Source of the DNA: Orbicella franksi
Lineage: Eukaryota
Length of the DNA stretch: 64,000 bases
NCBI GenBank assembly: GCA_964199315.1
Contig: OZ116700.1
Span: forward strand, 32,984,001-33,048,000
Direction: 5' to 3'
The translations under genes were made by a program, and so were the position numbers. Shown piece after piece: positions 139-64,000 of the stretch; the stretch's first letter is position 1; each line of letters begins with the position of its first letter. The notes beneath the pieces were generated by a model. It searched no databases. It was not told the DNA's origin and saw nothing but the letters and a program-made list of their open reading frames with translations.

Positions 139-342
139 CGCATTCTCCTTTCTTAACCACATTGAGTTCTCGTTTGATCTTGCATGCTTTGGCTCTCATA
201 TAACACTTGCTGGGGTAAGACCTTCCGTTATCAGCACACACACGCTCGTCCGGAGAAGCACATCTCGGGCACTGGCACTTGGCTTTGTTGTCAACAACAA
301 CACAATCCTGGTACGACTTGCAAACATGGAATGAGCATGGAT
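139..342 (-). CDS. Exon: FS/Kazal module 20
   Basis: 204 nt, phase 1-1; DPCSFHVC...CPRCASPDERVCADNGRSYPSKC...KGECG. Confidence 0.9.
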
Positions 343-3300
343 CTAAATAAAAAAAAATGAGCAGATGAGTTTACATACGCTCGTTACAAACTTATCAAGT
401 AACAACTGTTCCGCAGCCCAAACTATGATAACCAGTACAATGGGAAATCTACGAGGACCTGCAAACAGAATCAATCTGTAAACGCTAACACGCTTTAGTC
501 GAAATATTTCTATTGGCATTTCTTAGTAACATAACCGCGATAAAGATTTAAGAACATTTTTTTAAATTATAAAATAGTTCAACGAGAAAAACGCGTCATG
601 TAAGCGAAGGTAACTGCCCTCTTTACTTAGCGAGGGTTATTTCACATTGAGCACAGAACCCAAGGGTGACGGCGACACTTTTCTTTGCACAACGCAATCG
701 TCTTCACTCACCGCATTTCCCTTGTTTCATTTCCATCTTACGTCCGCAGGCAGCAGCCTTAAAATAGCACTCATTGTCATACGTGATGCCGTCACTTCCA
801 CATACGGGTTCCTCTGTATCTGGGCATTCAGCTCTTGACTGGCAGACGCAGCGGGTGCCACCGTCAGGTTGAACTTCACATTTGGTTTGATTTGCGCATA
901 CAACGAATCTACACGGCTCTGAAATAAAACAGGTACAGGATAGTTAACTTGGATGGCGTTTATTTATTTAAGCCGAGTAATGCCTTCATTTATGGCCTGT
1001 CAATAATTTGGATTTTAACTCAATTTTGCAGAGCAAGATCCGAAAACCAAAGAAAAAAAAGGTTTGAAAAGTTAAAAGGTTATTCAAGACAAACTTGAAA
1101 CATGCAGCCTCAGGTTTTCATGTTTGTGAAATTGCAACGCACTTCCATCCTCGGCAGCGCAGGACTGGTTTCCCAACAAGTCTTCCTCCACGTTGGGGTA
1201 TATACCATCACTAATCAAACATTCTTGGAAAATCGAGACCTTCTTTAGAAATAATCCTTTTTGCTGCCATGACAACCTGTGAATTAGCTGGAGTAATCTG
1301 ATGTGCTCCATTACAGCAGCTTAAACAACCAAAATCTAAAAACTGCTTCAATGATATCACACATGGAAATCGAAAAAGCCATAAGAAGTTTTTTTGGAGA
1401 TATACCCGGCTCTCATCTTACCACAAACTCCGTCTTTTCTCTTGTCCGTGTTTTCTCTCTTTTCACAAGCGATAACCTTCATAAGACACTCGTTGATGTA
1501 AGTTTTGCCATCAGTGCCACACACTGGTTTAACCACGGGCACACAGTCGTCTTTCTTCGGACACACACATGTGGGTGTTCCATCAGGGGCGTTATGACAC
1601 ACCGCATACTTTGGACACTTTATGATGTTGCATCCGCCTGCTGAAAAAAACAAAGAATGCACTCAAAAGAGTACACCATCTGATCACCAACCTAACTGGA
1701 GAGAACATTCATTTCTTCAACGCCAACTTAAAGGAGTTTTGTCACGGCTTGTGCATCTTGAAAACCTTAGCTTAAAATTCTTCAAGTTCGTCGTTTGTAA
1801 TCTGTGTCAATCTTCTCCATCCTTGATCATCCTTGTTCCTTTATGGTTTATTAGTATCTCTGAAGTGCTTTTCTATCGTAGTAAACTATTATTTTCAGGT
1901 TTCCTTCAATTGAAAGGTGATTTTGTACGTAGCCAAAATAACTCAAAATACCGTGACTGAGCTGCTTTGAGGAAAACTAAACACAAGCACGGGATAGTTT
2001 ATTGTTTGTTCCCACTCCTTCTCTGTGATTCGGTTAGTACAGTGACTTATTGTTAGCTCGATGTTTTATTTCATTAACTGGGATTACGTTAGCTTAGACA
2101 TAACTATAACAAAACGAAGTCAATGTGAATCTCAGCCTACACAGCGCAATGAACTGACCAATCAGGATCAAGCGCGGGAAAACATACAATCGTAGGAAAG
2201 GTCCAATAAATAACGTAACGAGAGCCAGATGACCATTGGTTTTGGTTCGGCACCTGAGAAGCTAAGAAAACGATATGACACAAATAACGCAAGTACTTAA
2301 CTTTTCAAGGCACAAGTGACTTACCACATTTGCCTTTGTGTGACAGGTTCAATGATTTATTCTCCAAAGCAGCGAGGCAAGACTTGACAAGGAGATAACA
2401 TTCATTAGGATACGCATTGCCATCTGAACCGCAGACCGGCGCCGGAGAGTAACTGCAGTCACGGACATTCGGGCACTGACAAGTTGCCTTGCCTTTCACC
2501 AGTTTACAGACTTGATTCGCGGGGCATTTCATTCCGTTGCAAGTATCTGAAGTGGAACCACCACAGGAAAAAAATAAATTATATTCCAATGGTAGCCCAA
2601 TAAATCCGGCTACCAAAGAGCCGGTAAAATCTAGCTGAAGTAAACAATAAATCTGGCGTATTATTAGGACAACCGTATACATGGAACTCTCAAATTTAAA
2701 GAAAATGAGGGAGGTCTTGTTTGGGCTAAAATGAGAAAGCAGTAAGGGAGGGGTGGGGAAAAGGAATGGTGGCGTTTTGTACCTTGTTTTTCTTACGGAA
2801 CGTCGTTACCAACTTTCAATCGGTAGTGCTTCCGTTCAGCCGAGATATTTGATTTGAAATCAAATTAAGTGACACATTCGTCACTCTTGCCAACCTATCC
2901 ACCATCATTTGAATTGAAGAATACATTTTCAACAAACGCGAATTTTTGTCTTAACATTTCCATCCAATATGGGTACGTTAGAAAGCCCTTTTGGGAAACA
3001 CTTCTCACTCTGCTCACCATCTTCTTTCATACTCACGCCTTATTTCTCACACAGCTAACAGACACAAACTGTCAATTCGCACAAAACAATACTATAGACC
3101 TTACCACATCTGTCTTGTTTAGTGACCACAAGTCCGCCGGACCCTTTGCACGCCTGTGCCTTTAGTTTGCATTCATTGTCGTACGTTTTACCGTCGCTTC
3201 CGCACACCTTCTCGCCAGACAACGGACATTCATCCTCTCGAGGACAGCGACACTCGTGATGACCGTTGGCTTTGACGAAACATTGAGAGTTTGGAGCTAA

Positions 3301-6300
3301 GCACTTCACCAAATCACAGATAACTGTAGAGAATAAAAACACTGAATCAGCAAATAGTATTAAGTCGAACCTCTCCTTCTTAACTCTATGTTACCGCAAG
3401 CTCACTTGGTCCAAGGGAAGCGAGAATATAAACAAGCTTTACTTGTTAAATTCGCACGCCTCGATGTGGTCGGTCGGTCTATCCGCTGGCTGGTCGATTG
3501 GTCAGTCGGTCTATCCGCTGGCTGGTCGACTGGTCGGTCAGCCGGTTGTTTGGTGGATGGATCAGTCAGTTGGTCGGTCAGGCAGTCATTCAGTGGGCCG
3601 AACAGTGGGCCGGTCGGCCTAGTGGGTCAGGGGGTCAGTCCGTCGGTCACTCAGTCAGTCAGTCAGCCGATTGGTCGTCGGTTGGTCGTCGGTTGGTCAG
3701 TCGCTCCATCCATCATTCAGACAGGCAAACAGACAGAAAGACAGACAGTCATTCATTCATACAGTTAGTCAGTCAGTCAGTCAGACAGACAGACAGACAG
3801 TCATACAGTCCGTCAGTCTGTCATTAAACCACTTACTGTCTACTCACCACAATAACCCCCCCTTTTGCGTGAGACTTTCTTTCCTGCTTTACAAGACTTG
3901 GCCTTCATGACACACTCGTTCAAGTAGCTCTGACCATCAGAACCGCAGATCAAGTCTACTTTCCAAGGACAGTCAGCCTCGGACGGACACACACACTTTG
4001 CTTTGTTGTCCTTCACTTCACATGTTGCCTGGCTGTCGCAGTTGGCTGTATCACAAGGAGCTGTGGCGACAATTAAGAATAATTATCAACAATGGAAACC
4101 AGAATAATTGTACAAAAGACACTGTGGATTTTGGAATCGCGAGTGCACACCAGGTCTCGCTTTGATAAAGAGACTTAGGTCAACTCAGAAACGGGCTATT
4201 TTAGGTTAGAACTGATTAGTATATTAGCATGAACAAGAATGTATTCATGTCCAGAGCCAGTCTGGAACGAGTAACGTTAGGTTTGTTGTAACTTAGAATT
4301 AAGTTTGGAACGATTTAATAACGACTTTCATAGTTTGGTGTTTTCGTCCTACCGATGATTGCTAATAATTTCTTAAAGGATCGTTTCAACTTGTCTTTTT
4401 TTTTTTCATCTCTCATAGATTGAATTTCCTTTAAAAGGACGGAATCCCCCAGCCCTATCACTTAACCTTCTAGTCCCGGTCTTCCGGGCCCGATAACCTT
4501 TGCACGCTAATTATCCGAATTTTGGAACTGACAGAGTTGTAAAAACTGAATGCATCGACCTTAACCAATGCTCACCGCATTTTTCAGTAACGACTGGGCT
4601 GATTCTCTTGCCCTTCCTGCAGGAGTCGACCTTCATAAAGCACATGTTGTTGTACACTTTATGAGTAGTTCCATCGCTGCCGCACACGAGGACCTTCACA
4701 GCGGAACAGTCGCGCACATCTGGACAGCGGCATTCCACTGAACCCGATTTACTGGCACACAAGGCGTGGTTGATACAACTCTTCAGCGAACATGGAGTGA
4801 CCACTAACCCTGAAAATCACAAGCACGCGATTGGCATAAAGCAGACGCATGCGCAACGTACAAGTTCTACCACAAGGAGGAGAAAGCGAGTCATTTAACA
4901 GATAACTAAGCGACGTAATAATTAGAAAAGGATAGGATTCCAATTTCAGGGTGAGTTTTTGAAGTTGGAATTAATCTAGAAGGTATAGCGCTTTTTATCT
5001 TCTACGTGTTTATCAAAACCTGAAAGATATCGGGACCACCTCAGGAAATTTCAAGACGGAAAAGAAAAAAAAAGAAACTTTTATACTCCTATATTTAATA
5101 GCAAAAACGATTTGGCTTCAACGCACTCTGGAAAAGAAGCCATGAATTTAATTGAGCTATAGAAGTTGATAACTTCACCTGAGAAACTCGACCTTCTGTC
5201 TACTGAACATGCTCTATGACCATCAAAAAACTATAACCTTGAATCTGTACATGTTAAATGGTTACTTACCACAGCTGCCAGGTTTAATAAAGAGCCGTTT
5301 GTTCTTCTCACATGATTCCTTCCTTGCTTTGCATCTATTTTCGTACGTTTTGCCATCACTGCCGCACACGGGCTCGCCCAAACTGGGACAGAAATCAGGA
5401 CAACTACAGACAGCTTTACCTTGAGAATCTACCTTACAGTCTTGGTCTGAAGGGCAGACTGATTTGGAGCACGGAGCTGATAGGACAAGACAGATTAATG
5501 CGAGTTAAATGAAGTACATTCATAGATAAAAATTAGAGAGTTTAAGAAAACCGCAACGGGAACCGTCACTAGACAATAGCAATGGAATGGCTGTATACGT
5601 GATTTTAATTCTTGGTACATTTCTTTATGATTTTATTGTATTGCAAGGTGGTTACAACATTTCAGTGAACAAAAGTTGTAAAAAGTTGTAAAACTATGTG
5701 TAAACACTCAAACGAAAGCTTTCGATGTGTGAAGTCACGTGCAAGCCTGTTTAACAAGATGTCAGTTAATTTTGACATGCGTAAAAAGGTCATTTTCAGA
5801 CATCGCTAGCTCCGAAGAAGGCATAACACCCGGAAAATCAGCTCTCCAAGTCCCCTTTGATTGCTTCATTTAGCAACCGACGCATTACAAAAGTTTCGCT
5901 AAAACTAATCTTCTGTCTTGAATTTCAATCTCGGCAGCAACAGACTGCGTTCCTGCGTTTCTATTACATTATCATTAACTGAAAAATGTGGCCCCTAACA
6001 TTAAATCTGCGAAGAAAAACTGGAATGAAATCATCAGAGCTGTAGAAAAGTAAAAAGTGAACAATCTAAGAAATCTGAAATCTATTAATTTTAAATAGAA
6101 ATCTACTAGTGTTCTATCACGAATGCCGTTCTCTGATTGGCTACGCTACTCAATATCTGCTCAATTTCCGCTGTAGGTAGTGAGTAATCCATCAGTGTGT
6201 GCTTCCTAATAAACTGGCGACCATTTCTTTGCAGAGGATTTAGATTAAGTCTTGAAAATTCATTTGATTTAAACCGGCTAAAACAATTACATTACTCGCT

Positions 6301-9300
6301 CTCGATTTCTATGCGCGATAGTTGATTCAGGCTGCGCCCTCGTCAACTATCACGCGATAGAAATTTCAAGTTCATAGTCTAATAGTTGAGTATATTCTTG
6401 TAAAACAAAACTTCGCCATGTTATACTCACTACACTGTCCTTTTCGCTTGACTTCAATTTTGTATTTCAGGGCACAAGACTCGGCTTCCAAGAAGCACTT
6501 GTCTCGATAGGTCTTAGCATTGTCTCCACAAACCGCTCTGGTGGCATTTGAACACTGGTCAGCGGTTGGGCACGTGCACTGTGCAGTACCAGATCCATCA
6601 TCCGCTATGGTACATGTACCGTAATAGTCTTCGCAATCCGACAAAGAGCAGGGACCTGGAGAAAACAACATAGAACAAATAAAGAGAGCAAGTCAGTGAA
6701 AGCATATTCTGAGATGTAATTTTCATACCGCATACTCCATTGTGTTTCGTTGTAACATCGGTTCCCTCCGCGCAGCTTTCCGCCTTCAGCTTGCATTCGC
6801 TCTCGTAAGTCTTGCCATTCGTACCACATACGGGATCATTGATATCCGGGCATTCCTCCGCCCGAGGACACTCACAGGCCGTGGAGCCGTCAGGTATCAG
6901 TTTGCACACGGAATGGTGTTTACAGTTGGCAGCTTGGCAAGGATCTGAAGATCAGTAGAAGAATAAACTGTTAAAGTTGGCGTGTAAGAAAAATGGCAAT
7001 ATTTTACGCGGCTAATAGGCAATAAACGTTTGTCGAGGCGGATAACGAATACTAGTACGGAGCCTTTCCCTTTTCAAATGAAAGTGTACTCGATGTTGAT
7101 TTTCGTGCAAATTTCGACACATTTTTACGAGGTTTGGCACCGAACGTAACAGAAACACCACAGACAAATGGCTTATTTATTTGCTTCCTTTCCAAAATTT
7201 CGTCGCCTGTCAAAAGCTATGCAAACTAAGCGGTAATTACGGACCTGACCTCTTGCAAGAACTTGAAATCTGTGGATTTAACTTGAAAATGAAGGCAGAA
7301 ATCTGGAGATCTCCAGAAACGAGCATCTGAAGATTTGCAATGGAAAAATACTCTAAAAACACGTTAATCTGCCATTAAGATTTCACTATCTTTCAAGGGA
7401 GTATAAAATGATAGGACTTAACGCTTCATCCCTTCAGGCCAGGTAAAGAACATTTCAAAGAACATTTAGTTCACCGACAGTGTAACCCTACCACACACTC
7501 CCTTCTTGATCACTACAAGCGACACTTCTGTGCTGCAGGCTTCAACTCTCATTCTGCACGAGGTTATGTAATTTCGCCCATCGCTGCCACACACTGGATC
7601 ATAATCTCTTGGACAGTCATCTTCTGTCGGACACTTGCAAGTGGGTGTATTCAGTTTACTTGCCACACACCGCTTGCCTTGAGAACAGCGGGTGTCTTTA
7701 CAAACCACTGTTAAATACAAACCAAGCGGAGATATACATGTAAATCGACGAAACGCTAAACCAGAATTGAGTTATAAAGCAGCTTTCCAAGCAAAATTGT
7801 GGTAGGAAAATGAAAGTTAGTGTTGAATGTTAAGTTAAGTTCGTGAATGTGACGGCAATAAAAACGTAAAGTTCAATGTGACCTGTCATAAACGCGGGAA
7901 ACATAGAGCGGTTTTCAGTTGAGTGTCGTAAAACCAAAACCAAAGAAATTAATCTAACCAATCACAAAGGACACAGACAATACAGCGAACCAATCAAAAC
8001 TGACTGTAATTACAGGTAGCTCACGCGAAGCGCGGGAAAACGTGTGCGAGCGAGTCACGGTTGGTCTTATTTTACTTCTGATTGGACGGAAAATAGGCGC
8101 GAGTTTTTTAGGCCAATCGAGTAGCGACGTAATGCAAAATCACTTACTTTGCGACACTCAAGAGAAAACCGCTCTAATTCTGTTAGTTACTTCACTACAG
8201 TCCAACGTTAGATTACATCAGTATGTACAGCAAGTTTGACATACTGATCGAGGCGGTAAAAATATCGGATTTGGCGTTAATTTTATACATAAAGAAATGC
8301 ATTGCGGTGAAAATGAAAATATAACTGTACCACAAGGACCAGCATGCTTCACTCCAACTGTTGTGTTGCTCTCACACGACTCTGCCTTTAGAATGCACTC
8401 ATTCAGGTAGGTGTTTCCATCGGTGCCGCACACACGGTCCTTCTCCTTGGCACAGTCCTTCTTCTCGATGCACTTACAGGAAAATGTACCGTCCTTTTGA
8501 CCCATGCATACTTCATTTGAACGGCAACTATTAAGTCTACAGGATCCTATGGATAAAGTAGATAAAACACGGCATAACTATATTTTAACACAACTTGCTT
8601 TGTATGGGTAATTCAAAGGTGACGAGTGAAAGAAAGGAAATAATTTAACGCGCGTTTTGTCAAAATTCTAATAATGGCTCAGAAATTATTAGAATTTTGA
8701 CAAAACGTAAGTGAAATTATTCTTAATTTCACGAGTGTACCATTTGATCACCTTTAAATATAAGGGATGCCAAATTACGCTCACAATTTTTGACTCGTTT
8801 GTTGTAACGAGAAGTTTCGCGCAATTTTGTAATTTCACTTGTGAAATTATAAATTAAGGCTAAAATTTCGAGCCAAAATATAGGAGTACTTTGTCACCCA
8901 TGATATTATGGTTGTAACATCATAAACAGAGTTGGAATGCTCTTTAATTTTGCAACAAGATGGTTTGAATTTCTTCCACAATACCCGAGACATGAAGACC
9001 AGTTCATGGAAAAGGCTTTTTGCCTGCTTAAGTTTTAACTAAATTCGAGTACAACCAAAAACAAAATGTGCTTAAAGGTATTGTTAAGACTTACTATTTG
9101 GAATTAAGAAGAATTGAGGTTTTAACAAATCACGATGCACCAGTCATTGTTGCCATACTATAACTCAGTTAATCACTCACCGCAAGGTCCTGTATGACGC
9201 ACGTCTACCTCTTTGTTATTTGCACAAGCCGCCACATCTAAGAGACACTTGTTGATGTATGTCTGTCCGTCTGAGCCACACACTCCATCACCATCTTCAG

Positions 9301-12300
9301 GACACTCATCTTCTGTCCGGCACTTACACGTGACCGAGCCGTCAGCATTTCCAGTGCAGGCCGCGTTGTTTTTGCAGTCCTTAGCGAGGTCACATGGGCC
9401 TGAAAGGATCACCCATGCATACAATTTTAGAAATAGTGTAACGAAGCATGGCCAAGGGGTTAGGGCGTTGGTCTTGCAATTCAGAGGTCCCTGGTTCAAG
9501 GTCATAATCCAGGGCCTAGCTGGAATTTACTTCTTCTAGCAGTGGTGAATTGGTTAGTAGCCTAACTGTTCATTCAGGTAGAAATATTTGTTTCATGTAC
9601 AACCTCGCCCTTCCCAAGCAGCACACGTTAGCAAATACAAGCTATTATAAATCAAACAAAACACAATTACGTTTTATTTTATATTTTTTCTTGAAAAAAT
9701 AAAACAAAATACCCATTCATTGTTTGATGTCGACAAATTGTAATGTAGAGACTTTGCTTTTTGAAGATGACACTCGACAGTGGCTAAAATTGCCTATAAA
9801 CTTGTGGCCCACATAAATTATATTCACTCACCACAATAGCCATCTATCAAGACGTAAACTGACATTTCTTTCAGACAAGCCTTTGCTTTCATCACACACT
9901 CGTTGAGATATGTTTTGCCATCACTGCCGCATACAGTGTTAACAGTCATAGGGCAGTCCCTTTCATCCGGGCACTCGCACTGAACGTTCCCTTGAGAGTC
10001 CACCGTGCATTTCTTGGGTTCTTTACATTGCACACCAGCACAAGGCTCTGAAATAAAATTCACAACATAAAATGTCTGAATGGAGCACCCATGTTGGCAG
10101 GGCATTGATCACAACAAACGCAAAAGACAATTGCCAACATTTTTGAAGAGCAATATTAGGGAGCTTAAGCAAACCACGACGACGACGGCAACGAGAACGT
10201 CACCAAACAAAAAGTTTAATGAGCAAAACAACAGCTGTGCACGTGCGTGATAAATCTTTTTACATTTCTTTGCCGTCCTCTGCAAAACAACAACGTGAAA
10301 TGACCAAGTTTTGCGTAATCTGAAGAACGCGAACGACGACGGCTAATGTTTCGTATTTCCATTTTAGAAATGAACGCTGTCATTGCATATTTGTCTGAGC
10401 ACTTTCCGAGAGCCATTGGCGTGGTGAACAGATCTAGAAGTTGCGAATTTCGCCGGTAAAATATAAATTGATTTTTGACTAGGCGTTGTGCTCGGCGTCG
10501 CCGTCGTCGTTGCTTAAGCTCAAATACTTTTTTTGGTTCTTTAGGTGAGAAACACTTAAAACAACGAAAATATACTAACCACACTTTCCAGGTCTCTGTG
10601 CATCGACGGTTTCATTCATTAAGCAATTATCCACGTCCAGATAACACTGATTGATGTAAGTCTCGTTGTTCTGTCCACACACGGGAGCCGCAGTCTGGGG
10701 ACACTCCCTGACGTCCTTACATGAACACTGTGCATTTCCATCCTTCACTTCGCATCGTTCATGTTCCCTACATATAACACCAGCACAAAGACCTAGAAAG
10801 GAAAGTTGCCAAATGCTTTAATTAAAGGTTATCGTATACCTTTAGAGGTGTCTCGCGTCCAAGCGCTGTAGCGCGTCCGTTTAAACTGTAGATACCTGAC
10901 CCCCTATATCAAGTTAAAGCTTATAGAGCTGGCTATCAATCTATACGAAGAATTTTGAAATACAATGAGCTGTAGAATTTTTCACGACCTGTGAATGCGA
11001 GTATCCGAATCACCGTCAAAGGTGAACAACAAAATTCATCTCACTGATTGTCATAGGTTTCCTTCACAGTTCGTTTTGAGAATTTGGTGTTATATCAAAA
11101 CTATATCCACTCGTTGTATAACTATCTTTATTCTTATCACCCACCTACTTGATAACGTATTAATATACACCATCAAAACAAACCATTGTAAACTTAACAT
11201 TCGGTTTGCAGCTGTAAAAGTTTGGAATAATTTGGAGAAAATATGAAACACCTCCCCCTTTAAAGTTTCAAATACAAAGGTAAGTTTAGTATCTAACGCC
11301 TGGCCAAACGGAGTCGCAAGTGGACCCAAGCGTTCAATTCAGTGATTCAATGATATTGCCAACATTTATGAGTTTTCATCTGGCACTTACTAGTGACTTA
11401 TTTATTACCAATTTACTTTATTTCTAGGTATTTAGTGACTTATTGATTTATTCTGCTTACTTATTTGTTGTTGTTATGTTTTTTTCCTTTTATCCCCATA
11501 TTTTGTCTCCTTTCTTCTCCCCCCTTAAAAGCTTTACTGCCAACCAACTTCTTTATATACGTACTATTTAATTTCACCCAGCTCGAGTAGCTTTTAAGTT
11601 ATTCTGGGTGAATTTACCTAATTTTCTGTTACAATTATCTTTTTTTGTAACTAAGAGTTTTTTCTATTTTGGTAATAAAGTGTGTGTTGTCCTGTCTTGT
11701 TATATGTAAGGAGAAACTTGATTTCAGATCAAAGCTTACCACATGGCCCCAAGTTGTCAACAGTGATATCCTCTCCTTTTTTGCAAGCCTCAACTCGTAA
11801 TGCACAGTCATTATAATAGGTAACCTTATCACTGCCACACACTTGATCTCTAGTGGGTGGACAGTCACTCATCTTTGGACACACGCACTCCGTGGAGGTG
11901 AAATCAGTTGCTTTGCAGCGCGCATAGTGTTTACAAACCTTCTTCGCGCAAGGGTCTGTGAAATGAAACAAATATTGTCTTAGCCACGAGAGGAAGGCAA
12001 AAAAAGGCAGGGAGCGGAGGTCAAAAGCAACGAAGAAACAATGAAAGGCAGGAAAGAAGATAGACACAACGAAAGAACAAACATGTCTAGGCCTAAAAAT
12101 CTAATCGTACAAAGCCAGATGAGATTTTGACCACAAAAGACAAGCTCTACGACAAATTCTCCAGTCCTACGTTTTGCATATGGTGGTTTAAGTTTACCTT
12201 CACAAGTGTCTTTGGTCAGCCTTGCACTCAGATAACCAAGCTCATCCAGGCTGCTCACAGTGTGCATAAAATTGCTTCCACTGGCAAGACTGAGATGCCG

Positions 12301-15300
12301 AGAAGAGGGCGTCTTAACAGTAACAGCGACAACGAATATTTGAACACCTGTGTTCTTCAGGGCGGCGGCGGCAGACTTCAGATCCTCTGTGATTTTGCCG
12401 ACAACTATTGCAATCAGAGATTTTGGAACCTGCGAGAAAATAGCGAGTGATTTTGACATTCTCCCTATCTTATGTGGAAAAATATTAATACACACATATA
12501 AACCATAATTATCTACACTTTGGAGTGCCTTAAAGGAGCTCAGTCGCGTTATTTTGAGTTATTTTGGCCACGTACTAAATTACCTTTAAATTGAAGGTAA
12601 CCTGAAAATAGTTGTTTGCTAAGATAGAAAAACACCAAAGAGTTAATGATAATAACCCATAAAGGAACAAGGACAGTTGGATGGACGAATTCCAAACGAC
12701 GAAATTGAAAAATTCAGGCTTAACTTTCCAGGACGTGCAAACCGTGATAGAGCTCCCTTAAATGAAGTTTAAATTAGAAATAACATAAACAGCACAAGTG
12801 CTTACCCCGGTTCTTCCTCCATTCCTGAATACCTCTGATGCCCTTCGTAGCATGTCACTTAGCCTACTGGTCGGATCTGAAGGGAAGTCTCTCTTAGCAG
12901 GCAGCCCAGCCACTCTAGCCTTCAGTACTCCGGGCCGAGTGTGTTCTCTGAGCGCAATATCTTTCCGCGCGGTCTCTCCAACCGTGATAACACCAACGTG
13001 AGTTTTGATGTCGGAAATCGTGAAAGCGTTGATCATCGTCAGAACAAAATTCTTCTGCTGGTTGTATTCCGAGGTTGATAACTCGGCAGAAGAGTCTAAA
13101 GCGAAGACCACATCCATGGGAAATGGACAAGCTGAAATTTACAAAGTGTGCTTGTAAGTGATGTGGAGAGTTAAATTGAACAAAGGACAAAAAAAGCCGA
13201 AATGCGATGAACCTCAAATTGAATGCCTATTTGACGCACTCAGTACGTCACGGTTTTCGCACCTCAGGTGCCTTTATGACGTACTGAGTAAGTCAAAATT
13301 TTAAGAGATTTAATCAAACTCCAAGCGCGCTGGAAACAACTTTTATCGGCGTCTGAGATTCGTAGGAGATTTTTCGAAAGACTTCTAATTTCGCATTGTT
13401 ATGAAGTCGTATGGATATCAAATTACGTCAACCTCGGCGAAATTACCCGCATTGAAGAGACACTTTTATCACCTTTTAGAAAATGTGTACATGTCTATAG
13501 TTTAAGTGAAGAGGCTTCAAGTTTTTACTATACACCGATTTTCAGTGAAAATGGTACGGCACGCAGTACACAAAGGTCTGGCACTCAAGGGGTTAAATCA
13601 TCTTGACTTACCAGCGTGGATAGGAGTAGGAACCACGCAAAAGAGTCTAGACGGGGGTTTTATTGGCCGAAGGGCGTCTAGCGGAGCTTCCTCTCTTTAT
13701 TATTGTAATTTTCTACTGATCGTAGGTGCTACCCACCTGCAGGAATAGAACACAAGGGCTCCACTAAAATGGCTCCTCTGGTCGGTTTACATCTACCACA
13801 CCACCCACCACACTTGGCAGACACCACGGCACCATCATGTGACTTCATGTAATCCTGTAGCTGTAAACCACTCGGGAAACCTTGCAGTGTCCACGTCACA
13901 TCATCCCGAACCCGAAGTCTCGTCCCGCTCAAATCCACCTTGAAGCCACCCTTGCGGCATTTGCCCGTGTTCACCGAATAACAATCCCCAGCAGTGCCAT
14001 ATGCAATGTTCTTTCCTTCCTCCGTCTGGGCAAAGGTGAAGTCATTGCTGATAATCCTCATGGTTGCGATGTCAAGGCGCACTTTAGTGAAATTTGTTGT
14101 TCCTCGTTCAGCGTACAACTGTGTTCGCGCAGGCCCACTGCAGCTGAACCTGTCCTGTAGCCGTTGGTGGTAGATAATAGCGTAGTTGTTCTCAGCTCCA
14201 GACTCCAAAGTTATAAACTCCCGCGGCGAGTTGGAGGCCATCATGTGACAGTAAATTCTGATTGGGTCTTTACATCTGTCACTTGCCTGAACAAGGTAGT
14301 GGCCATCAGATGAGTACCCGGATGTCTTCACTTCTACGCAACTGTGAAACACTGTTGAAATTATGACAAGTAAAAGATTTCAATTTGGTTGTCAGTGGAA
14401 TGATTTCATATTCCACTACATGAGAGAAATTCATATGACTGCTGTGAAACAGTGAAAGTAACACAAAAGCATCTACAGCCAATCAGAACCGTAGAAAGTG
14501 AAATAGACCCCACAGATTTCAAAGAATAAACAACTGATCAAACTTCTGGCCAGCGCGGGGAAACACAGAACCGTTGTCAAGGCGCGAGGACGTAAAAGCG
14601 ACGACGACGCTTTGATCGGCTAGAGCATTATGACTGAAATTACGAGCTCACAAAGCGGTAAAACAAAGCACAGTGAGAAATAGTATTATCTAATTCTCAC
14701 CACCTGTACACTAGATACTATGTAATGAAAACTATTCCGTCGTTGAGTGGGAAAGTGCAAGCTAGTCGCTTTTGAAAATTAAATGATTAACCAACCTTTG
14801 GCAGCGATAAATGGTACTTTTTTCGCCTCTTCTTTGTCCCCACCAGGCTTGGGTATCACCACGAGGTTATCTCCTGATGCAATAACTTTAAACTTGTCCC
14901 CATCGGGTTTGTCCGTGATGGCAATGACAATGATCTTGACTGGCTTCTCCCGTAACTTGGCAACCTCGTCCATGATGGCTTTAGAGTTTTCATCAAAGTC
15001 ACCCTCGGTCATAACAACGAGAATATCCTCCGCAAACGGTCGCTCGCCACGCTGGAGAGTAAAGACTGAATCGCGAACCTTTTTCAGAGCGTCACTCAGT
15101 GTACCTGGCCTAGAGCCTGGACCAGGAATGTTCTCAGCCACAATTTTGAAATTCTCCTTGGTGTAGCTGTCACTGAAGAAAACCCTGGCATTGGCAGGGA
15201 GACCGTTGTAGTCCACGAGGGCGAGATGCGTCATGCTCGCAGAAACTTCATACTCATCGACAATGTTCTTTAAGATTGTTACCATTCTCGCAAAGTTGGA

Positions 15301-18300
15301 CGGAGCTTTTGGTCCAGAGGTGCCGATTACAAAGGCTAAATCGATGGCTTTCTCTGTAAACCAGAATGACGAGAAAGGGGTTCAACATAAAACAACAATG
15401 ATACCGGCAAAAAGCGGTCGAGAGAATTTAGAAATCTACAGTTTTTACTTTGGGTTTGTCACGCATTGTTTGGTTGCGTGACAAGCACAGAAAGAGACAC
15501 TACAGAAAACTGGTATAGTAACGCAATTTTCGTTTGCCCGACTAGTGAAAACTGGAATAGTAAGGCAATTTTCGTATGCGCGACTTATGAAAACTGGTAT
15601 ATTAGCACGAATAGTTGGAACAGTAAACCGACGTCTGGCTTAAAGTTATGTATCGCAATGTTCAGTTGCGTGACCAGGGACAGAAACAGATACTACAGCA
15701 CATCCGCAATAACAAGTCGTACATAAGCAATATACAATCACCTCACTAAGGCTTATGAAACACAAAGTCAAATAACAATCTACAAATACGTACGGCAAAT
15801 TCCTTTTGATCTCACGGTGGTCATTTGTTTCTCCACGCAGGCCTTTGCTTTAAGCGCACATTCATTTGGATAAGTCACCATGTCACTTCCACAAACTGCT
15901 TTAACAGGTTCTGTTGAACAATCGTCTTCGCACTCGCATAGAGCGGTGTCATTTGGTAAGGAGCGACATTTGGCGTTGTAGCCACATTTAACTTCCTTGC
16001 AAGGATCTAAAGAATATAACACTGTAAGTTTGCCACTTGTAAGTTTGCAAGAGATTCTGTTGCTTAGAAACGTGCCTTTTATTGAAGTGGAACCCCCCAA
16101 AATAATAATGGTTGGAATTGATCGAAAAAGAGAAAAGAAATAGTTATGTTCAAATTTAGGTCAATGTACACGGCACCTTGAAGTTTGCAATTAAGATTTA
16201 GCGATGGCAATACTTGCCAGAAAGTAGAAGTGATGCATTTATCTATCTTGTTACTGGACCCCAATGGAGCGGGATGAGAGAGACGAAGAGGGGCTTTATG
16301 GAGTTCTGAAACGGGAGCCCTCTTCCAGTTTTTGCACTAAAATCAGGAGCTCATAAAAGACTTTTCTCTTCTTCCTCTTGCGGCCCAAATAAGAGCGTCT
16401 ATTCATGTTCTTTGAGCCTTTTTGTTATGGCGAGATTTTCTTTTCAGGTCCATTGAGACCCTGGAAACACCTCCTGTTGTGACGGTGCAAATTGTGTCTG
16501 TTAAAGAAAATGATTATAGGCAAAGAAAAAGATAGAAAGAGGACAAACTTACTGCAGTGGTCACTGTACTTTACAGTGATTTGTTTTTGCAGAAGACATG
16601 ACTGAATTCGAAGAAAGCACTCGTTTAAGTAAGATTTCACATCACTGCCACACACTGGCCTGTAATTCTCTGGACAGGAAACAAGACATGCGCAGTACGG
16701 GGTTCCATCCTCTTTAAGTCGGCAAGTTCCGTGGAAGGGGCATTTGATTCCAGAACAAGGAGTTGGGTCTTCAGAAAAGATTGAAAATAGATGGCACAGA
16801 GAAGAAAAAGTAAAAATTTCACAATATATAGAGAGAAGAGATTTCTGTAATGGGAGATTCAACCACAAAACAGTGCAATAGAAGAGACCTACCCATGCAT
16901 TGAAATCACAGAAGAGAAGAAGGTAGGGAGGTTTCTAGTTTACAAAGAGAAAGCGCGGGTAAAACGAAAGCAGCTGAATCCAAATTTAGCTAGTTTTTAG
17001 TTAAACAATGAAGTCTTTAAGTTTCTGCCGGAGAGATCTATAACTGTCTATAGCATCTAAAACAACTTTCTTTTTGGTGACAAATCTATTGAGACTTTTA
17101 AAACAAGACTTAGAACATGTCACACACCATAATCGTTTTGAGAACGAAATAACAACAGCAGGATCCGCTGATTATCACACGGTCGTTTGAGCAGCTCACT
17201 TGGCTTACGCATTTTCAGTTTCGCAGGTTATAATTCACTCACTTCAGTATGGCCTTGTGTTTTTTGTCAAGAGAAGAACTGAAAGAAGTTGGGTTTACAT
17301 CCGACCTCGATGTTTACACTAATGTCGAGGGAGGGAACACGGGGACAGGCGCCCTTGATTTGTGCTTCAAAGTAAACATCCAATATCGATCACATGAGAA
17401 AATGTGAAGTCGAGAAACAACATGCAACTTACTACAAGCTTTTTCAGACATAACAGAAGTATTTTGGCCCATGAAACAAGCCTCTCTTCTCAGAAAACAC
17501 GCATTCCAGTAAGTCCTTGAATTCGATCCACACACAGGGCGAAAAAATGAAGAACAAAGGTCAGGACAGACGCACAGAGCAGTGCCATCTCTTTGAATGA
17601 CACACTGAGCGTAGTGCGCACACTCAGTGGATCGACAAGCACCTACAGGAGAAAGCAAGGAACAGGACAGGCAGAGAAAGAATATCGGACATGTTAAGAG
17701 TAGAATGTACGTGATCTAAAGGATGTGAAGTAACTAAGTAATAAGTATTATGGAGACAGCAGCTTAAAACAAAGGAGATCAGCAATGACCTTGCTCTCAA
17801 TAGGAAGGAAAAAGTAAACTGAGAGAAAAGCAATAGCTACACCAAGAAAAACAATGAATAATGCGACTGGAAGATTGCAAAACTTGAATTGTCAAACTAA
17901 GACAAAAGAAAATGTGTCTTAGACGGAGAACAACGTAAATGAAAGCCAAAAAAAATGGTGTTCTCATTCTCATCTCATGTTCTCATTTTGTAAATTTTAG
18001 GACATTTATGAATTATTTAAGAGTTGCCCTGAACTCAAGACTTATCTAGCTGAACGTTTTCCTTACTTTTCAAAACGGCCTTCATTACAGCTATAACCAG
18101 TATGTCTGGTTTGCCAATTTCTGGTTCTGGGTCCGTGATGACGTTTCCTTCATTAGGAGGAATTTGTATTCCGTCTGGACCCACCTGCTGTCCAATAGCA
18201 ACTGGAATCACCTTGAATTAACAACACAGTCGTTAGAAAAAGTCTCTCCCAAACTAATGGAACAAGGGGAAATACTAGCGTGTACACAACAAAAATTGTG

Positions 18301-22647: not shown

Positions 22648-25600
22648 GCGGAGAGCGTGTTTTTTTTTTTTTTTTGTTAACACTTATCCACTGGATAGCG
22701 TTATGAAGCCTTCGAACAACTGCGGTCTTTTTGATAGGAAGAGAACAAAAACCGACAGAATTCGCAATGCTTACTTTTAGCTATCGCGGCCATAATTTTC
22801 TCTCTAACCGTACGTGGATCATCATCTTTATCGGTCGGCACGATATCCTTCTTGTCTTTGTCTGGAGTCAGCGGAATAAGCTCATCTGGGTCGGCCTCAT
22901 TTCCAATAACTACAGTAACAAACCTGACTTTGCCGTCTTCATATTCACCCACGATCTTCTCGATCGCACTTCCGCTGTTGACAGACTTCTTGTCAATCAT
23001 CACCACGATTATCTTCCGGGAATCTGGTCGGGCACCTCCGCTTAGTAAGAAAAAGAGCTGCTTTGTAGTCTCCAGAGCGTTCACCAAATCTGGAGAACCA
23101 GAAACCAACTGGGCGCCTTTAATTATAGACAGCTGTGAATCTTTAGTGGTCTTTTGAAACGGTAGTATTATGTTGGCGTTTTGCCCAAAGACCACCATGC
23201 TGTAAAGATGCTTTTTGACGCCATATTGTTCGATGATTGATTCCATAGTGGACTTGATGAGTTTAAAATTATCACCGCTATCAACAGCGGTTGTGCTGAC
23301 GACAAATGATATGTCTAATCTTGGAAACCTGGTTGTACCTAAAAATAAATAAAAACAAACTGGTAATCACTAGCTCAATCACAATCTAAATTATGCAGCA
23401 CGCATTACGACAAAATTAACTTTAAGTCAAAATTGTTATATATGAATTCAAAGGATTTTAAGATTCAGAACAGGTGAAAAACGAATCAAATTTGCTGCAG
23501 ATCAAACAGTGAATAACAGAAATAATCTACTTTGCAGAAGGGAAGTTGTTTTTATAGTAGTCAATGCGCTTAGCTACACCTAGCTAAGCTCCTAGATAGG
23601 ACTGCACTAGAATGTAATGCACAAAAGTTCAATTCTGCGCGTGTTCTTCTGTACTTATTTAAATCCATTCGCTTTTTGTCTTATTTTTAAAAGCATTTAT
23701 AGATTCATTTTCAAGTGTTATGAATTACTTCCTACAACGATAAGACTGTGATTAGAAATACATCTACACAAAGAGGTTTGAAGAAAAAGAAGGAGGAAAG
23801 TTTGAAAACGAAATTACTTACCACTAAGCAATTTGTCCTCTATCTTATCAGCCGTCTTAATCGGATGATCTGTGTCGTTTGTTTTGATAACATCCTCATC
23901 TGGGAACTCCTTTTCGAAGTCAGGAACAGGCTTGTTACCAATAGCAACAAGAATCACAGCTATCGAGGCCTCTATCAAGTCCTTTGCCGCTTTGTTGATG
24001 GCTGGCATGTTACGACCAGTCGAGGCATCCGTGATAATGACAAGAACCTGAACACAAGGAAGATAACAGACACAGAAGTTAATGTAAAGGCACGACTTAT
24101 ATCAGAGCAATGCTAAAAGTCAATGGAATGGTGAAAGATTTTAACGTTGGGTAATAGCAAAACGAAAACAGAAATTGAAACGCTTTTATTAACGGTAAGA
24201 TGAAATTGTGCAGTACAAATATACAGCCTTTGAAGCAAAGTGTCGTCCAAGAGCATTACCACAGACAGAATTGGAAGGCACGAAGTCACTACCGCCGTTA
24301 ATTACAAAAATCTAATACCAAGTAACATGCGGATGAATAAAGGGACCACAACTGAGTTTGTTATGGAGACCCACGAGTGAAAGGGGCCTATTATCGTTCA
24401 ACTGTCCAATAGCGGCGCTCGTAAATAACGCTTCCTTTTCAGTAACACATACCTTCTGAGCATCTTTCCGGGCAGACTCGCCTTCAAACAGTCTCTTTGC
24501 CGAAACAAGAGCCCTGTCCAGTGCAGGCTCGTCATTGTTACCAGCTATCAAATCAATGTAACTCTCAAGTTGTTTAGGATCGCTGAACCTGTCCCTGAAG
24601 GGAATCCTTATGGAGGCAACTTTGCCAAAAACAATAAGCCCATATTGGACCCTGTCGCTGAAGAATCTCTTCGTTACTTCCTTCACAACATCCAGGATAA
24701 CTCCAAAATTGTTGTCGGTTGGTAGTGCACTAATGGCAAAGGCGAGGTCCAACTTTGGTACTTTGGGCGTCACTGTAAAGTGCGCAAGACAAGATTATAT
24801 ATCTAAAACGGTTATTGCCATTAGTGTGTTTTCTTGAAAAGATAAAAGAACTTAAACAAGGGACTTCGTTTTTATTTCTTTTCTTAAAGTCATAATTAAG
24901 CAGTGGTTAAAAGTGGAACAATTCCTTTTAATGCGCTAAGTCATGGACAGAGTTTCACGACGAAATTTACTCCTTTTGATAAATTGCAATATATGATTGA
25001 ATATAACCGACGCGTAGATCCTTTAGGGTGGTTTTCACTTGAGTGTCGAAAAGTAATTGGTTTTGAATCAACTTCGCAACACGATAAGCTTAAAAAGCTC
25101 GCGCCACTTTTTCATCCAATCAAACGTAAAACCACACCAGTTGTGACTCGTTCGCCCGCGTTTTCCCGCGCTTCGCATCTGCTACCTGTGTTAAATTCAA
25201 GTTTTGATTGGTTCATTGGATTGTGTGTCATTTGTGATTGGCCAAAGTGATTATATTGGTTTTGGTTTTACGACACTCAATGGAAATCTGCCCTAAACAA
25301 ACAACAGGTCCAACTTTGGTATGTGGTACGCTACCTTTAAGGACTTTCGCCATAACTGATTTGCCAAGTTCTGTTGGGTCAACCTCACCAGGAACAACAA
25401 CTAGTACGTCTTTATACGATGAAATTTCCTCGATTTCTTTAGGATCGATATCACCGCCAATGGCAACAGGAACAATCTTTACATCAGCGAATTCCAATTC
25501 TTGAGCTTCCTTCCCTGTTTCTTGTTTATCTCCTATTGGTGATTTGTCTGCAATCACCACCAGGACTTTCTTGGCGTCCTTCCGAGCACTCGACTGGAAC

Positions 25601-26899
25601 AATTCCTCTGCCTTCTGCAGCGCCTTCTCCAGGGCGGGATTTCCAGCCTCATTCTGCATGCTATCAACCGTAGTTAGCCAATTCTCCAGGGATGGGAAGG
25701 TTCTCTCAAAGCCGAGGGTTACCTTTGCGTCAGAGCCGTAAATTATTACAGCATAACGTAGGTCACCAACACCATATTTCTTGATTATGAATTTTACGGT
25801 CTCTTTCACTTTGTCCAATGTTTGCCTAGCATTAAGAGCTGCTGCACTTATGGCGAAGCCCAGGTCGATCTTCTCTGTAATGATCGAGTCTGGAGAAGAA
25901 AATGAAAGAAAATCTAACTTATTGCCCTTTAGATTTTGCTTGGATTATTGGTAAACCCAAATCGTCTCTTACCCTAGGAATGGGTTATTATAGTAGAGTA
26001 GCTGCAAATAATACAAATTTAAAAAAGGTATACATATCACTGGACAAAAGGATATTACTGTTTCTTCATATGGTACACTGCAGAGCGTCTTTCGACGTTT
26101 GTTTGAAGATGTCGGAGGATTCATAATCAATGGTAATAAACTACTAAATTGAAATAAGCGAGTAGCTAGGAACAAACCGTTTAGCACTATCGTCACCAAC
26201 TCCTTCACAACTTCCTCGGGACCGCTGTCTTTTCCTGGCTCGATAACTTCTGGCGTAACGGTATCAGACTCGTCGCCAAGTGCAATGGCAATAACACGAA
26301 CACCATCATTCTTCAGCTTCTCAGACGCAATTTGTACTTCTTCCTCACTGCTGTCTGATCTCTTATCAGTGATAACCACTAAGACCTTCATTGCATTTGG
26401 CCTCGCATCTTCAGCTAAGGCAAAAAGGTATCGCGCTTCTTCCAGAGCTTTGTCAAGAGCTGCGTCACCGAAGGCTTTCTTTACATTATCAACAAGTGTG
26501 CCAAGTTCCTCCTCAGTGTCGAAAACGTTGTCAAACCTGATTTTAACATCAGGTGTGGCGCCAAACGTGATGAGGCTGTACCTGACACTGTGAAGGCCAA
26601 ACTTTTCAACCGTCTCCTTGATGATTTCTTTCGTTTTCTCGAAGTTCTTGTCTTGATCCACAGCAGTTGTACTTATGACGAAGGCAAGGTCCATTTCCGG
26701 TACGAAAAGTGTTTCTGGAAGAAAATGAAAATAGAAACAAAGATCTGGATCAGTTTGCTCACATCAAGGTTCTTGCTGCACTGTGCACATCTACGTGAAA
26801 AGTGTGTTCATATCGGATACTAACTGACCTACAGATAGGCAGACCGACAGAAAAGAACAGACAGATAGATATATACATACACATACAGACACACAGGCT

Positions 26900-26932
<33 letters not shown>

Positions 26933-29900
26933 GTAGAGAAACAGACAGCAACAGACAAATAGACAGTCAGACAGTCAGACAGACAGAGAGACAGACCTAC
27001 AGACCGACTGACCGACCGACCAACAGATAGTACGCGAGTCTGCTGACAAGGATATTGAGTTTATGTTATGCTTTACACATAAAAATATTTGGCAAATATC
27101 ATTGCCAACATGTCAAACATAAGCAAAAATAAATACAACTAAAAGTACCTTCTATAACCTTCGCCATGATTACTTTAACCAGGATCTTAGTGGTTGAAGT
27201 ATCTGGTTTTGTTATAACATCCTTCTTATGCGGCGTTAGCGTTTTCAACTCTGCGCCATCTGTTTCGCCTCCCAACCCAACTGGTATGACCTTGATTTGA
27301 GCCTGCTCCAGAAGAGAAGCTTTTTCACGCAGCTCGTTTTCGTCGCTGTCAGATTTTGTATCTGTTATCACCACCAAAACCTTTCTGACACCGGGGCGGG
27401 AATATTTGTTAAATATTTCCTGTGCTTTTTGGAGCGTAGCAGCCAATGCGGAGCCAGATGCGCGATCAACTGACTTTAAGGTTTTCAGCAGCTCATCGGT
27501 TGGTAAATTATCGTTGAACTGGATTTTAACGTCTGGAGCGGAGCCAAAGACGATGACACTGTAGTGAATTCTCTCCTGACCAAACATTTCTACTATCTCA
27601 TCGATGAGAGCTTTCATCTTTTGGAAGTTGGCTTCCGACTGGGCGGCATTGGCACTGATGGCAAAGGCCAGATCCACTTCTGGTATGATGGGCAAATCTA
27701 CACGTGAACAAAAAGGAAATATAAATATAAAAATAAATAAATTACAGCATTTAGAGAGAGACCCACATCAGCTTTAGCTGGTTTTCATACAGTTCCTCTA
27801 TCCTGGTGGAATTGGAATTTGGGGATGTTCGTTTTGGGGAGGAAGGAAAACCGGAGAACCCGGAGAAAAACCCTCAACAACAAACTCCACCACAAGATGA
27901 CTAAAACTATACATTATTATAGAAATGACGTATTGACAAGCCATATTTGTACGCCTAACGGAAGTAATTATAGGTAATAGATGTTTTAAGTTTTTTGCTA
28001 CAGGATGCAAGAGATGAAGAGCTAGTGATCTCAAGAGGAAGAGAGTTAAAATATTTTGGACCACGATAGAAAGCAGAGAATTGCCGAACATTAGTTCTAC
28101 ATAACGGAAGACGAAAGGAGTGTGCTTTCCTTTCGTGGTAACCATGGATTTGGTTGTTTGTCTTTAATATGTTTACAAATTTTTGAGCAAGAAGAGAGTT
28201 TCTAAAATCATACAAATTAGTTCTGCTTGCCAGGGTTACAAGTTCTATTAAAAAAATCCTCACCTTTCAATACGATGACCATAACTTCATCTCCTAATTT
28301 CTTTGGATCTTCATAACTTTTTTCGCCTTCTATGAGATTCCCCTTGTTCGGTACCACCTTAATAAGTTGACCAGGGTCTGCCTCCTTTCCTACAGCCACG
28401 GCGATAACCTTGATATTTTTGTCTTCTAGTGGTTTCGCAGCTTTCTTTAACATCTCCAATTCATTCCGAGATTTGCTCCCAACAAAGATAACCAAAAACT
28501 TCTTCGCTCTGGGTCTAGGCGGTGCGGTGTCAAACAATTTTTCTGCCCTTTCCAAAGCTTTTATCACATCTGGCTGCCCACGCGGTCGAGAAATGCTCAT
28601 GATATTTTCGATTAATTTGTCCAGATTGACAACCTCCTCTCCAAATGCTGTTACCAAGCCTGGGTTTGTTCCAAAGGGCAGAATGGAATAGCGGATTTGA
28701 TCATATTTTTTGTACTTTTCAATGATGCTTGTCACTGCCTCTTGCATTTTCTTGTATGTTTCTCCCGCATTCGAATCTGAGGTGCCAAAAGCAACGCATA
28801 TGTCCATTTCAGGGACACCAAGAGATTCTGAAACAAAATTTAAAATAACACCGTGAGTACGCCAATGAGTATTGTATCGAGTATTTAACACTTAAAAATG
28901 ATTGCCTTGTTCCTGTCGACAACTGCCAGAAATGTTCTTCATTCCTTCAGCTAAGAACTACAATTCCGACCAAAACGTTTGGGACACTTCAGCATTTTTC
29001 AATAAAAACAGTATTTCAATCCCCCTCCCTCCCCCGTGGATGTCAGGAGTCAAAGTGTGTCATAAATATTCTACAGTCAAAGGACTTCAACATTGTTAAG
29101 GGGGAGCGAAGGAAGGATCCCTGTAGGGCTATTTCTATGACTGAGAATTGTTGGTTTCTCGCAGTTTCCACGTAAAAACGCAAGAACAAAGGGAAGTGTC
29201 CCAAACCCTATTGGTCAGGATTGTATGTTGAAATAAAATAGTCCTGGAGAGTACACGAACACAAACTCACTAGCTTTCATTATGATCTCATCTGCAATTT
29301 TCTCGGGGTCATCTTCTCTGTCTGCTTTGACGATATCATCCTTATCAAGGGTTGCATTTGTCAGTTCTGGTATGTCTACTTCTCTGCCAAGTGCCACAGG
29401 AATGACACGGATTTTGTCATTTTCCAGAGGGACGGCAGCCTTTCTAATGTCCTCTTCAGTGCTACCTGATTTGTTATCAATGATTATAACCAGGACCTTC
29501 TTGGCATCAGGACGGAGATCTGTAAAGTGAGCCAGAACACCAAAACATTATAAACACCATAAGGTCTTGTACAAAATGGTCGATATAGTGTAGCCATAAC
29601 TCTGTAAGACTATTCCAGCGATTTTTGCGGTTCACTTGAAATAGTCAAAAGCTTTAAAGACTCCTGATACGTTATTTCATCCTTAATTTCTAATAGCAAT
29701 ACTCATGAAAAATTACAAAGTCACAAACTTTATAACAGCTAACAAAGTTATTAAACTTCTTACGGAGCTAATCCAATCCCACCTGTTAAAACAGTTCACT
29801 TCTAGCTAGTCTTTTAAATTCTTTAATTGTCTTACAACTTTTTTGTTTCATTACTTGAACCAATACATGTTCTGGTAGTGAGAAAAAAAGAACGATCTTT

Positions 29901-63978: not shown

Positions 63979-64000
63979 CTGGTAAAAACCAAACATAACA

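Follow-up and report, generated by a model that had tools for sequence, protein, structure and literature searches.

An internal GON domain in a very large VWA- and Kazal-rich gene of the coral Orbicella franksi

What would a GON domain do when it is embedded within a non-protease? In the literature, the domain is called unique to ADAMTS9 and ADAMTS20, and what it does "remains largely unknown" (PMC12226136, PMC10267602). The question is raised by a stretch of 64,000 nucleotides (nt) from the coral Orbicella franksi (GenBank assembly GCA_964199315.1, contig OZ116700.1, positions 32,984,001 to 33,048,000 of the forward strand), hereafter the window, which contains no N and in which a preliminary description had noticed a complete GON domain between two VWA domains. 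We found this exon, here called GON#2, to encode a module that is constitutively present in the interior of a giant, secreted coral matrix protein. We read it as an old GON of the free type, i.e., one that is not of the ADAMTS type, and consider it reasonably probable that it serves as an extracellular binding module.

GON#2 is a minus-strand exon at window positions 14351..13737 (615 nt, 205 codons), lying in an open frame (14352..13729, minus strand) with a translation of 207 amino acids (aa). The Pfam GON family (PF08685; InterPro IPR012314) matched it with 191.2 bits and E 2.5e-56 (cut-off 22.6), covering profile positions 2-193 of 199 and thus nearly the full length. The AGDCYS and CGGWCGRC motifs were both found in the translation, and all 15 columns that are invariant in a 40-sequence GON alignment were kept, including residues C34, C70, D122, C123, C131, C180, G181, G182, C184, and C187. 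Beyond this family framework, GON#2 contains two extra cysteines, C26 and C200, which occurred in about half of 23 free-type GONs and in none of the 17 ADAMTS-type GONs. The exon ends at 14351 and 13737 are flanked by AG and GT on the minus strand, and the introns on both sides are of phase 1; GON#2 is thus symmetric (phase 1-1), as a shuffled module would be expected to be.

Transcription and splicing were analyzed by comparing RNA contigs (two sets) and raw reads (two sets) with window positions 11700-17690 (5,991 letters). In 14 RNA runs from 13 coral-sample studies, 54-71% of the sampled words of positions 12700-15400 were present, which is close to the exon share of that stretch (approximately 59%). 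GON#2 was joined to its neighbors at both ends (joints 14351/14796 and 13131/13737, each reading CT..AC on the plus strand) in a poly-A RNA contig of 7,989 nt (X6) as well as in a 1,821-nt contig (X1), and among the raw reads of X23 nine crossed 13131/13737 and four crossed 14351/14796. The exon chain in X6 and X1 ran 15794-16006, 14796-15353, 13737-14351, 12804-13131, 12198-12427, and 11738-11955, the skipped parts between them all being CT..AC on the plus strand and hence GT..AG on the minus strand; upstream of exon 15794..16006 the transcript resumed at 18067. No joint skipping GON#2 was present among those listed from RNA contigs and reads over 11700-17690. Joined together, the six RNA-defined exons from 16006 to 11738 gave a single open frame of 720 aa with the order Kazal-VWA-GON-VWA-Kazal, in which the domain-bounding introns are of phase 1. 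In the 3' direction the X6 contig reached 4,595 nt past position 11738, within the Kazal array, and in the 5' direction it continued for another 1,232 nt, indicating that GON#2 is truly internal. The features concerned are the following.

13737..14351, minus strand: GON#2 (Pfam PF08685, RNA joints, AG/GT exon ends, AlphaFold2 model)
14796..15353, minus strand: VWA37, a single exon directly upstream of GON#2 (Pfam VWA E 5.9e-14; RNA-joined to GON#2)
12804..13131 (12804 ambiguous by 2 nt), minus strand: first exon of VWA38 (Pfam VWA E 1.1e-11; joints 13131/13737 and 12427/12804)
12198..12427, minus strand: second exon of VWA38 (Pfam VWA positions 102-171 on the open reading frame, ORF; RNA joints; open frame)
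15794..16006, minus strand: follistatin/Kazal exon upstream of VWA37 (Pfam Kazal_2 E 2e-9; joint 15353/15794)
11738..11955, minus strand: first follistatin/Kazal exon of the 3' array, just downstream of VWA38 (joint 11955/12198; Kazal hidden Markov model, HMM, E 1.4e-21)
140..11950, minus strand: the 16 modules of the 3' follistatin/Kazal array that lie within the window (own HMM map)
22770..63997, minus strand: VWA array as far as it lies within the window (own HMM map; exons and half-exons matched with E 1e-11 to 1e-83)

The preliminary description of a complete single-exon GON between domains labeled VWA37 and VWA38 was thereby borne out: the Pfam match, which lies above the curated threshold, the motifs, and the RNA joints on both sides agree, the exon is spliced to its neighbors within an open frame, and an independent HMM map also counted 37 VWA starts in the window before GON#2. 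Its placement outside an ADAMTS protease likewise agreed with the searches described below. The minus-strand orientation had not been given in that description.

To map the whole locus, the flanking genome was scanned with HMMs built from the VWA and Kazal exons of the window together with the GON model. The host locus spans approximately 114 kb on the minus strand, from +104,300 to −9,300 in window coordinates, and contains about 61 VWA starts, of which 44 correspond to single exons, together with 37 follistatin/Kazal modules and both GONs, with domain matches totaling approximately 14,600 aa. Read 5' to 3', a Kazal part is followed by the other GON (GON#1), by Kazal and VWA modules, by about 58 more VWA domains, and finally by Kazal modules; the VWA array has its upstream limit at about +97,900, and the 3' end has the order VWA37, GON#2, VWA38, and then 28 follistatin/Kazal modules reaching about −9,300 before the window start. 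GON#2 therefore follows the 60th VWA of the locus and precedes one further VWA and the Kazal array; with VWA exons on both sides and at least 4,595 nt of transcript beyond, it is not at the C-terminus. VWA37 and VWA38 depart much further from the array consensus than do most units of the array, VWA37 matching the array-VWA HMM with E 3.4e-19, compared to 1e-50 to 1e-84 for most single-exon members. GON#2 and its two divergent VWA neighbors form a conserved cassette at the hinge of the VWA and Kazal arrays. GON#1 lies between Kazal modules 89 kb upstream of GON#2 (window 103,089-103,688, minus strand; contig C3 33087089-33087688), matched Pfam GON with E 9.8e-52, and is 46% identical to GON#2. 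Genome-wide six-frame searches, which weak exons could escape, gave no Reprolysin or ADAMTS_spacer1 match in the locus (C3 32.96-33.13 Mb).

The AlphaFold2 model of GON#2 had a predicted local distance difference test (pLDDT) score of 94.8 and a predicted template-modeling score (pTM) of 0.90. In comparisons of predicted with predicted models, it reached template-modeling scores (TM) of 0.84 with both human ADAMTS9 and C. elegans GON-1, and of 0.83 and 0.84 with human and mouse ADAMTS20, respectively, all taken from the AlphaFold database (AFDB). On these predictions, GON#2 is a compact, beta-rich and disulfide-rich folded GON domain. With the GON domains of ADAMTS9, ADAMTS20, and GON-1 it shares family PF08685, the invariant cysteines, the GDCYS and CGGxCGxC motifs, and the predicted fold (TM 0.83-0.84), at 31-35% identity. 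The surroundings differ: in those proteins the domain is C-terminal after thrombospondin repeats and accompanied by metalloprotease, disintegrin-like, cysteine-rich, and spacer domains, whereas GON#2 is internal, between two VWA domains, in a locus without a Reprolysin or spacer match. Moreover, an ADAMTS-type GON of the same coral is spread over at least five ORF pieces, whereas GON#2 is a single exon, and it has the cysteine pair that ADAMTS-type GONs lack.

How unusual is such a domain outside ADAMTS? A phmmer search with GON#2 against 1.84 billion cluster representatives returned 632 matches, the top ones being non-ADAMTS proteins (amphioxus, snail, jellyfish, and coral fragments). In an architecture scan of 57 GON matches sized 300-1,853 aa, ADAMTS-type thrombospondin repeats (TSP1_ADAMTS) were present in 25 proteins and absent from 32, so that the domain does not occur only as the C-terminal module of ADAMTS9, ADAMTS20, and GON-1, as had initially been stated. 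Partner domains across the free-GON lineage included Lectin_C, F5/8C, WSC, Kringle, SUEL, Xlink, EGF_CA, Trypsin, VWA, and Kazal. Amphioxus alone combined GON with C-type lectin, F5/8C, WSC, kringle, SUEL, Ig, link, trypsin, and VWA domains, e.g., in Branchiostoma floridae XP_035686690 (Lectin_C-F5/8C-GON-WSC-Kringle-Ig) and XP_035660181 (GON-VWA). A fibrillin-like protein of the snail Gigantopelta (XP_041348350) had EGF_CA domains and three GONs, and a protein of the jellyfish Sanderia had the order Kazal-GON-Kazal. Free-type GONs also occurred in small proteins of 250-400 aa, and AFDB clusters contained many "GON domain-containing proteins". A Myxococcota cluster in the ESM Atlas showed GON beside InlB-type B-repeats, with TM 0.79 to the GON#2 model, indicating that the domain is not confined to animals.

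The free GON proteins of amphioxus, molluscs, and jellyfish resemble GON#2 in having an internal or N-terminal GON within extracellular mosaics, at 44-51% identity, and fall on the same side of the GON tree. They differ in their partners, and none had a VWA-GON-VWA cassette inside a VWA/Kazal giant; they are unnamed or automatically named predictions for which no published description was found. The preliminary description had allowed that internal GONs might be both common and already described. The first part held, since non-ADAMTS GONs are predicted in amphioxus, molluscs, cnidarians, and bacteria; the second did not, as the searchable literature on "GON domain" or "Gon-1 domain/module" concerned ADAMTS proteases among the papers listed, with one exception that merely lists the Pfam family. 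Non-protease GONs are old and common in invertebrate gene predictions, and with GON#2 it is the arrangement that is unusual, the part itself being known. An agrin-like giant of VWA and Kazal modules that carries two GONs of the free type and a conserved VWA-GON-VWA cassette appears to be undescribed in the literature. Two coral RefSeq models, XP_027046299.1 and XP_015778938.1, contain little beyond a free-type GON and are named "ADAMTS9-like".

Where GON#2 came from was addressed with an unrooted maximum likelihood tree of GON domains (LG+C20). ADAMTS-type and free GONs were split at 100/99 support. The ADAMTS side comprised ADAMTS9 of fish and Nematostella and other long proteins with a C-terminal GON, while all non-ADAMTS GONs, including GON#1 and GON#2, were on the free side. 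A multi-exon GON of the same coral, on contig C11, grouped with Nematostella ADAMTS9 at 100/97. Since GON#2 falls on the free side and the coral's own C11 domain on the ADAMTS side, GON#2 was not recently captured from a protease. The interpretation first offered for this exon is upheld in part: it was right in seeing a shuffled GON in a non-protease, with which the symmetric exon and the lack of a protease match agree, but such a domain is not exceptional, and a recent ADAMTS origin is contradicted by the position of GON#2 opposite the ADAMTS-type GONs. Because cnidarians and bilaterians occur on both sides, the two GON types were probably already separate in the cnidarian-bilaterian ancestor, as far as the tree allows. 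GONs of the free branch travel as one phase-1 exon, and in cnidarians, amphioxus, and molluscs they have been paired with many different extracellular binding domains. GON#1 and GON#2 belong to different sub-clades, GON#1 grouping with an Acropora "agrin-like" GON and two paralogs on contig C12, and GON#2 with a Pocillopora GON and a coral contig from ENA.

On C11, the GON, spread over at least five ORF pieces, lies on the strand of an ADAMTS_spacer1 match and 34 kb downstream of it (C11:3030054-3065375); this region is a candidate for the canonical ADAMTS9/GON-1 ortholog. The GON#1-type exons on C12 (C12:20275797-20276384 and C12:20373673-20374176) lie 98 kb apart, and the GON of the latter is split over two frames, which may reflect a frameshift, an intron, or a decaying copy.

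Is the arrangement conserved? In a second coral assembly (ENA ERZ25067889, L024), the order Kazal-VWA-GON-VWA-Kazal x4 was found on one strand, with a GON 73% identical to GON#2 and an upstream VWA with 68% aa identity to VWA37. The same 656-kb contig carries a GON#1-like exon approximately 144 kb upstream of the GON, on the same strand. Judging by the clusters that its proteins share with those of Acropora, this assembly appears to be from an acroporid. The ratio of nonsynonymous to synonymous substitution rates (dN/dS) of the GON#2 exon was approximately 0.20 (0.161/0.81 against L024 and 0.188/0.96 against Pocillopora), showing, at the level of these codon comparisons, that GON#2 is conserved under purifying selection.

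Among known matrix proteins, the host resembles agrin and the cnidarian "agrin-like" proteins in its long arrays of 10-cysteine follistatin/Kazal modules and as a secreted matrix protein. The closest case was Acropora muricata XP_067051278.1 ("agrin-like", 1,113 aa), in which a GON#1-type domain, 79% identical to GON#1, lies between Kazal modules and is followed by VWA. In octocoral skeletal-matrix agrin-like proteins, GON was not reported (PMC7853314, PMC7533068). Unlike agrin, the host locus includes some 61 VWA domains and, besides GON#1, another GON, and the laminin-G/EGF C-terminal part of agrin is not in the VWA/Kazal/GON map of the host, for which no laminin-G/EGF search was made. An agrin NtA domain at the 5' end was not confirmed: the candidate first exon (L019:4020-4526, minus strand), which begins like a signal peptide, matched no Pfam family at E <=0.01. 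With arrays of the collagen VI alpha-3 type the host shares many consecutive VWA domains, mostly one per exon, but it has no collagen helix and far more VWA units. Read from the translations, most VWA domains of the array have an "AISA"-like motif at the place of the metal-site DxSxS.

Several further features were observed around the cassette. Two intact follistatin/Kazal open frames on the minus strand (window 16554-16757 and 17434-17637; Pfam Kazal_2 E about 3e-8) were passed over in the RNA contigs, in which 16006 is joined directly to 18067; they had an RNA depth of 0 in X6, the poly-A run, and of about 7 in X1, and may be alternative or disused exons. The intronic stretch 12500-12699 had summed contig word depths of 10,000-17,000 in the RNA runs, compared to 60-260 for neighboring exons, with many loose ends and several variant letters, and behaves like a highly transcribed dispersed repeat. 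In the intron next to the one holding it, an RNA joint of the "opposite strands" kind (13296/13580) suggests an inverted repeat. Across 34 follistatin/Kazal modules, located in window 140-22378 and in the flanks of the window, the presumed P1 residue, taken as two residues after the second Kazal cysteine, had 15 different values (L in five modules, S in four, K, P, and R in three each, and others), as in broad-spectrum multi-Kazal inhibitors or non-inhibitory follistatin modules. Finally, a 148-aa open frame at window 20946-21389 (minus strand), for which no domain search was made, resembles a retroelement fragment by eye; it lies within an intron interrupting a divergent VWA domain (21750-21412/20088-19750).

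We propose that GON#2 would most likely act as a rigid protein- or ligand-binding (adaptor) module in the finished protein, and that it would thereby help the giant protein to assemble into the extracellular matrix or attach cells to that matrix; possibly it would also contact secretory-pathway machinery during export, as reported for the GON of GON-1 and ADAMTS9. As free GONs accompany lectin, adhesion, and protease-inhibitor modules whatever the size of the protein, a binding module seems to fit better than an export aid. Published work on ADAMTS-type GONs gives hints in both directions, and either may apply here: an ER-to-Golgi role, described below, and a yeast two-hybrid match of the GON-1 domain of ADAMTS9 to LRP1, in a paper that states the function to be "largely unknown" (PMC12226136). 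Weighing against this reading, no transcript joined the whole VWA array to the cassette, the longest RNA contig being 7,989 nt, and the host protein is known here from DNA and RNA. The closest GON of Pocillopora meandrina (69-70% identity) ends a short PAN-VWA-GON protein, with no VWA, Kazal, or GON exon in the 10 kb after it. The internal position is thus not universal among corals, Pocillopora was ruled out as an ortholog of the internal arrangement, and the VWA-GON pairing is either older than, or separable from, its place in the giant gene. Nor was there a solved GON structure, or a solved relative to hint at a binding site: sequence searches of the PDB with GON gave nothing below E 0.09, and the best structural matches had E 8e-3 and TM 0.23 (Foldseek) and Z 3.0 (VIA-align). 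We know of no ligand for any free-type GON, and the sole experimentally shown function of a GON is intracellular, in the endoplasmic reticulum (ER), which favors a role in export.

In that alternative, which is possible although we regard it as unlikely, GON#1, near the N-terminus, and GON#2 would engage ER machinery in cis and promote ER-to-Golgi transport of a cargo of approximately 15,000 aa. The ER-to-Golgi report cited in the preliminary description does exist: Yoshina et al. (2012) reported that a signal peptide with GON alone rescues this transport in C. elegans and HEK293, acting inside the ER (PMC3338439), and the extreme size of the host protein and its two GONs would suit such a role. 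The published effect, however, was exerted in trans on general cargo by ADAMTS-type GONs, which form the other clade, and free-type GONs also occur in the proteins of 250-400 aa mentioned above, which need no special export help.

A wider view of the family, which we consider doubtful, would make the free-type GON an autonomous, ancient secretory or receptor-binding module, from bacteria onward, that was captured once by the ADAMTS9 lineage, the two GONs being the functional handles of the host. They would then act as ER-exit signals in cis for large cargo or as docks for receptors of the LRP type. If true, receptor-dock GONs would play the role of the laminin-G part of agrin and tie a basement-membrane-bound VWA/Kazal cable to cells.

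It is less probable still that GON#2 is a spacer or oligomerization knob, i.e., a rigid hinge or self-association point between the arrays with no specific ligand. It lies exactly at the VWA/Kazal junction, its predicted fold is compact, beta-rich, and disulfide-bonded, and its N-terminal motif weakly resembles the starts of fibrinogen-related domains (FReD) and collagen C-propeptides (COLFI), some of which oligomerize. The resemblance comprised Pfam COLFI cross-matches on two GON proteins and on one Pocillopora model without GON, a profile match of GON residues 1-58 to 5k31 (E 0.097), Foldseek rows for FReD (E 8e-3, TM 0.23), and mixed GON/COLFI clusters in the ESM Atlas. It was not significant: profile-profile comparison (hhalign) of GON with 30 single-exon FReDs of the same genome gave 33.7% probability over 34 columns, and VIA-align gave Z 3.0 or less. 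Homology of GON to FReD or COLFI was therefore not established, and the initial 40-60 residues of GON were treated as sharing a short N-terminal motif with FReD/COLFI starts. Furthermore, the dN/dS of about 0.2 over the whole of GON#2 suggests more than a spacer. The same genome gave more than 160 six-frame Fibrinogen_C matches, many of them single-exon, with a tandem cluster at C5 25.02-25.78 Mb.

Very improbable is the decoy or dock suggested earlier, in which GON#2 would mimic the ADAMTS9 GON and compete for or recruit its partners beside the inhibitor array: the coral does have the candidate ADAMTS9-type gene on C11, and the predicted folds are alike (TM 0.84 to the human ADAMTS9 GON model), but GON#2 is only 31-41% identical to the sampled ADAMTS-type GONs, the two clades apparently separated before the cnidarian-bilaterian split, binding between GONs or to a shared partner is not known, and Kazal modules inhibit serine proteases rather than metalloproteases, which leaves the link to the Kazal array without a basis.

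GON#2 is most likely an extracellular binding module. The finding is moderately surprising, since cnidarians and amphioxus commonly shuffle domains in this way and public databases already contain GON proteins that are not ADAMTS. Automatic RefSeq names are misleading in this respect, isolated coral GON fragments being called "ADAMTS9-like" and the Acropora counterpart of the 5' part "agrin-like". The literature treats GON as confined to ADAMTS9 and ADAMTS20, and a transcribed, conserved GON in a non-protease exposes this gap between literature and databases. GON#2 thus offers a handle for studying the function of the GON domain without an attached protease.

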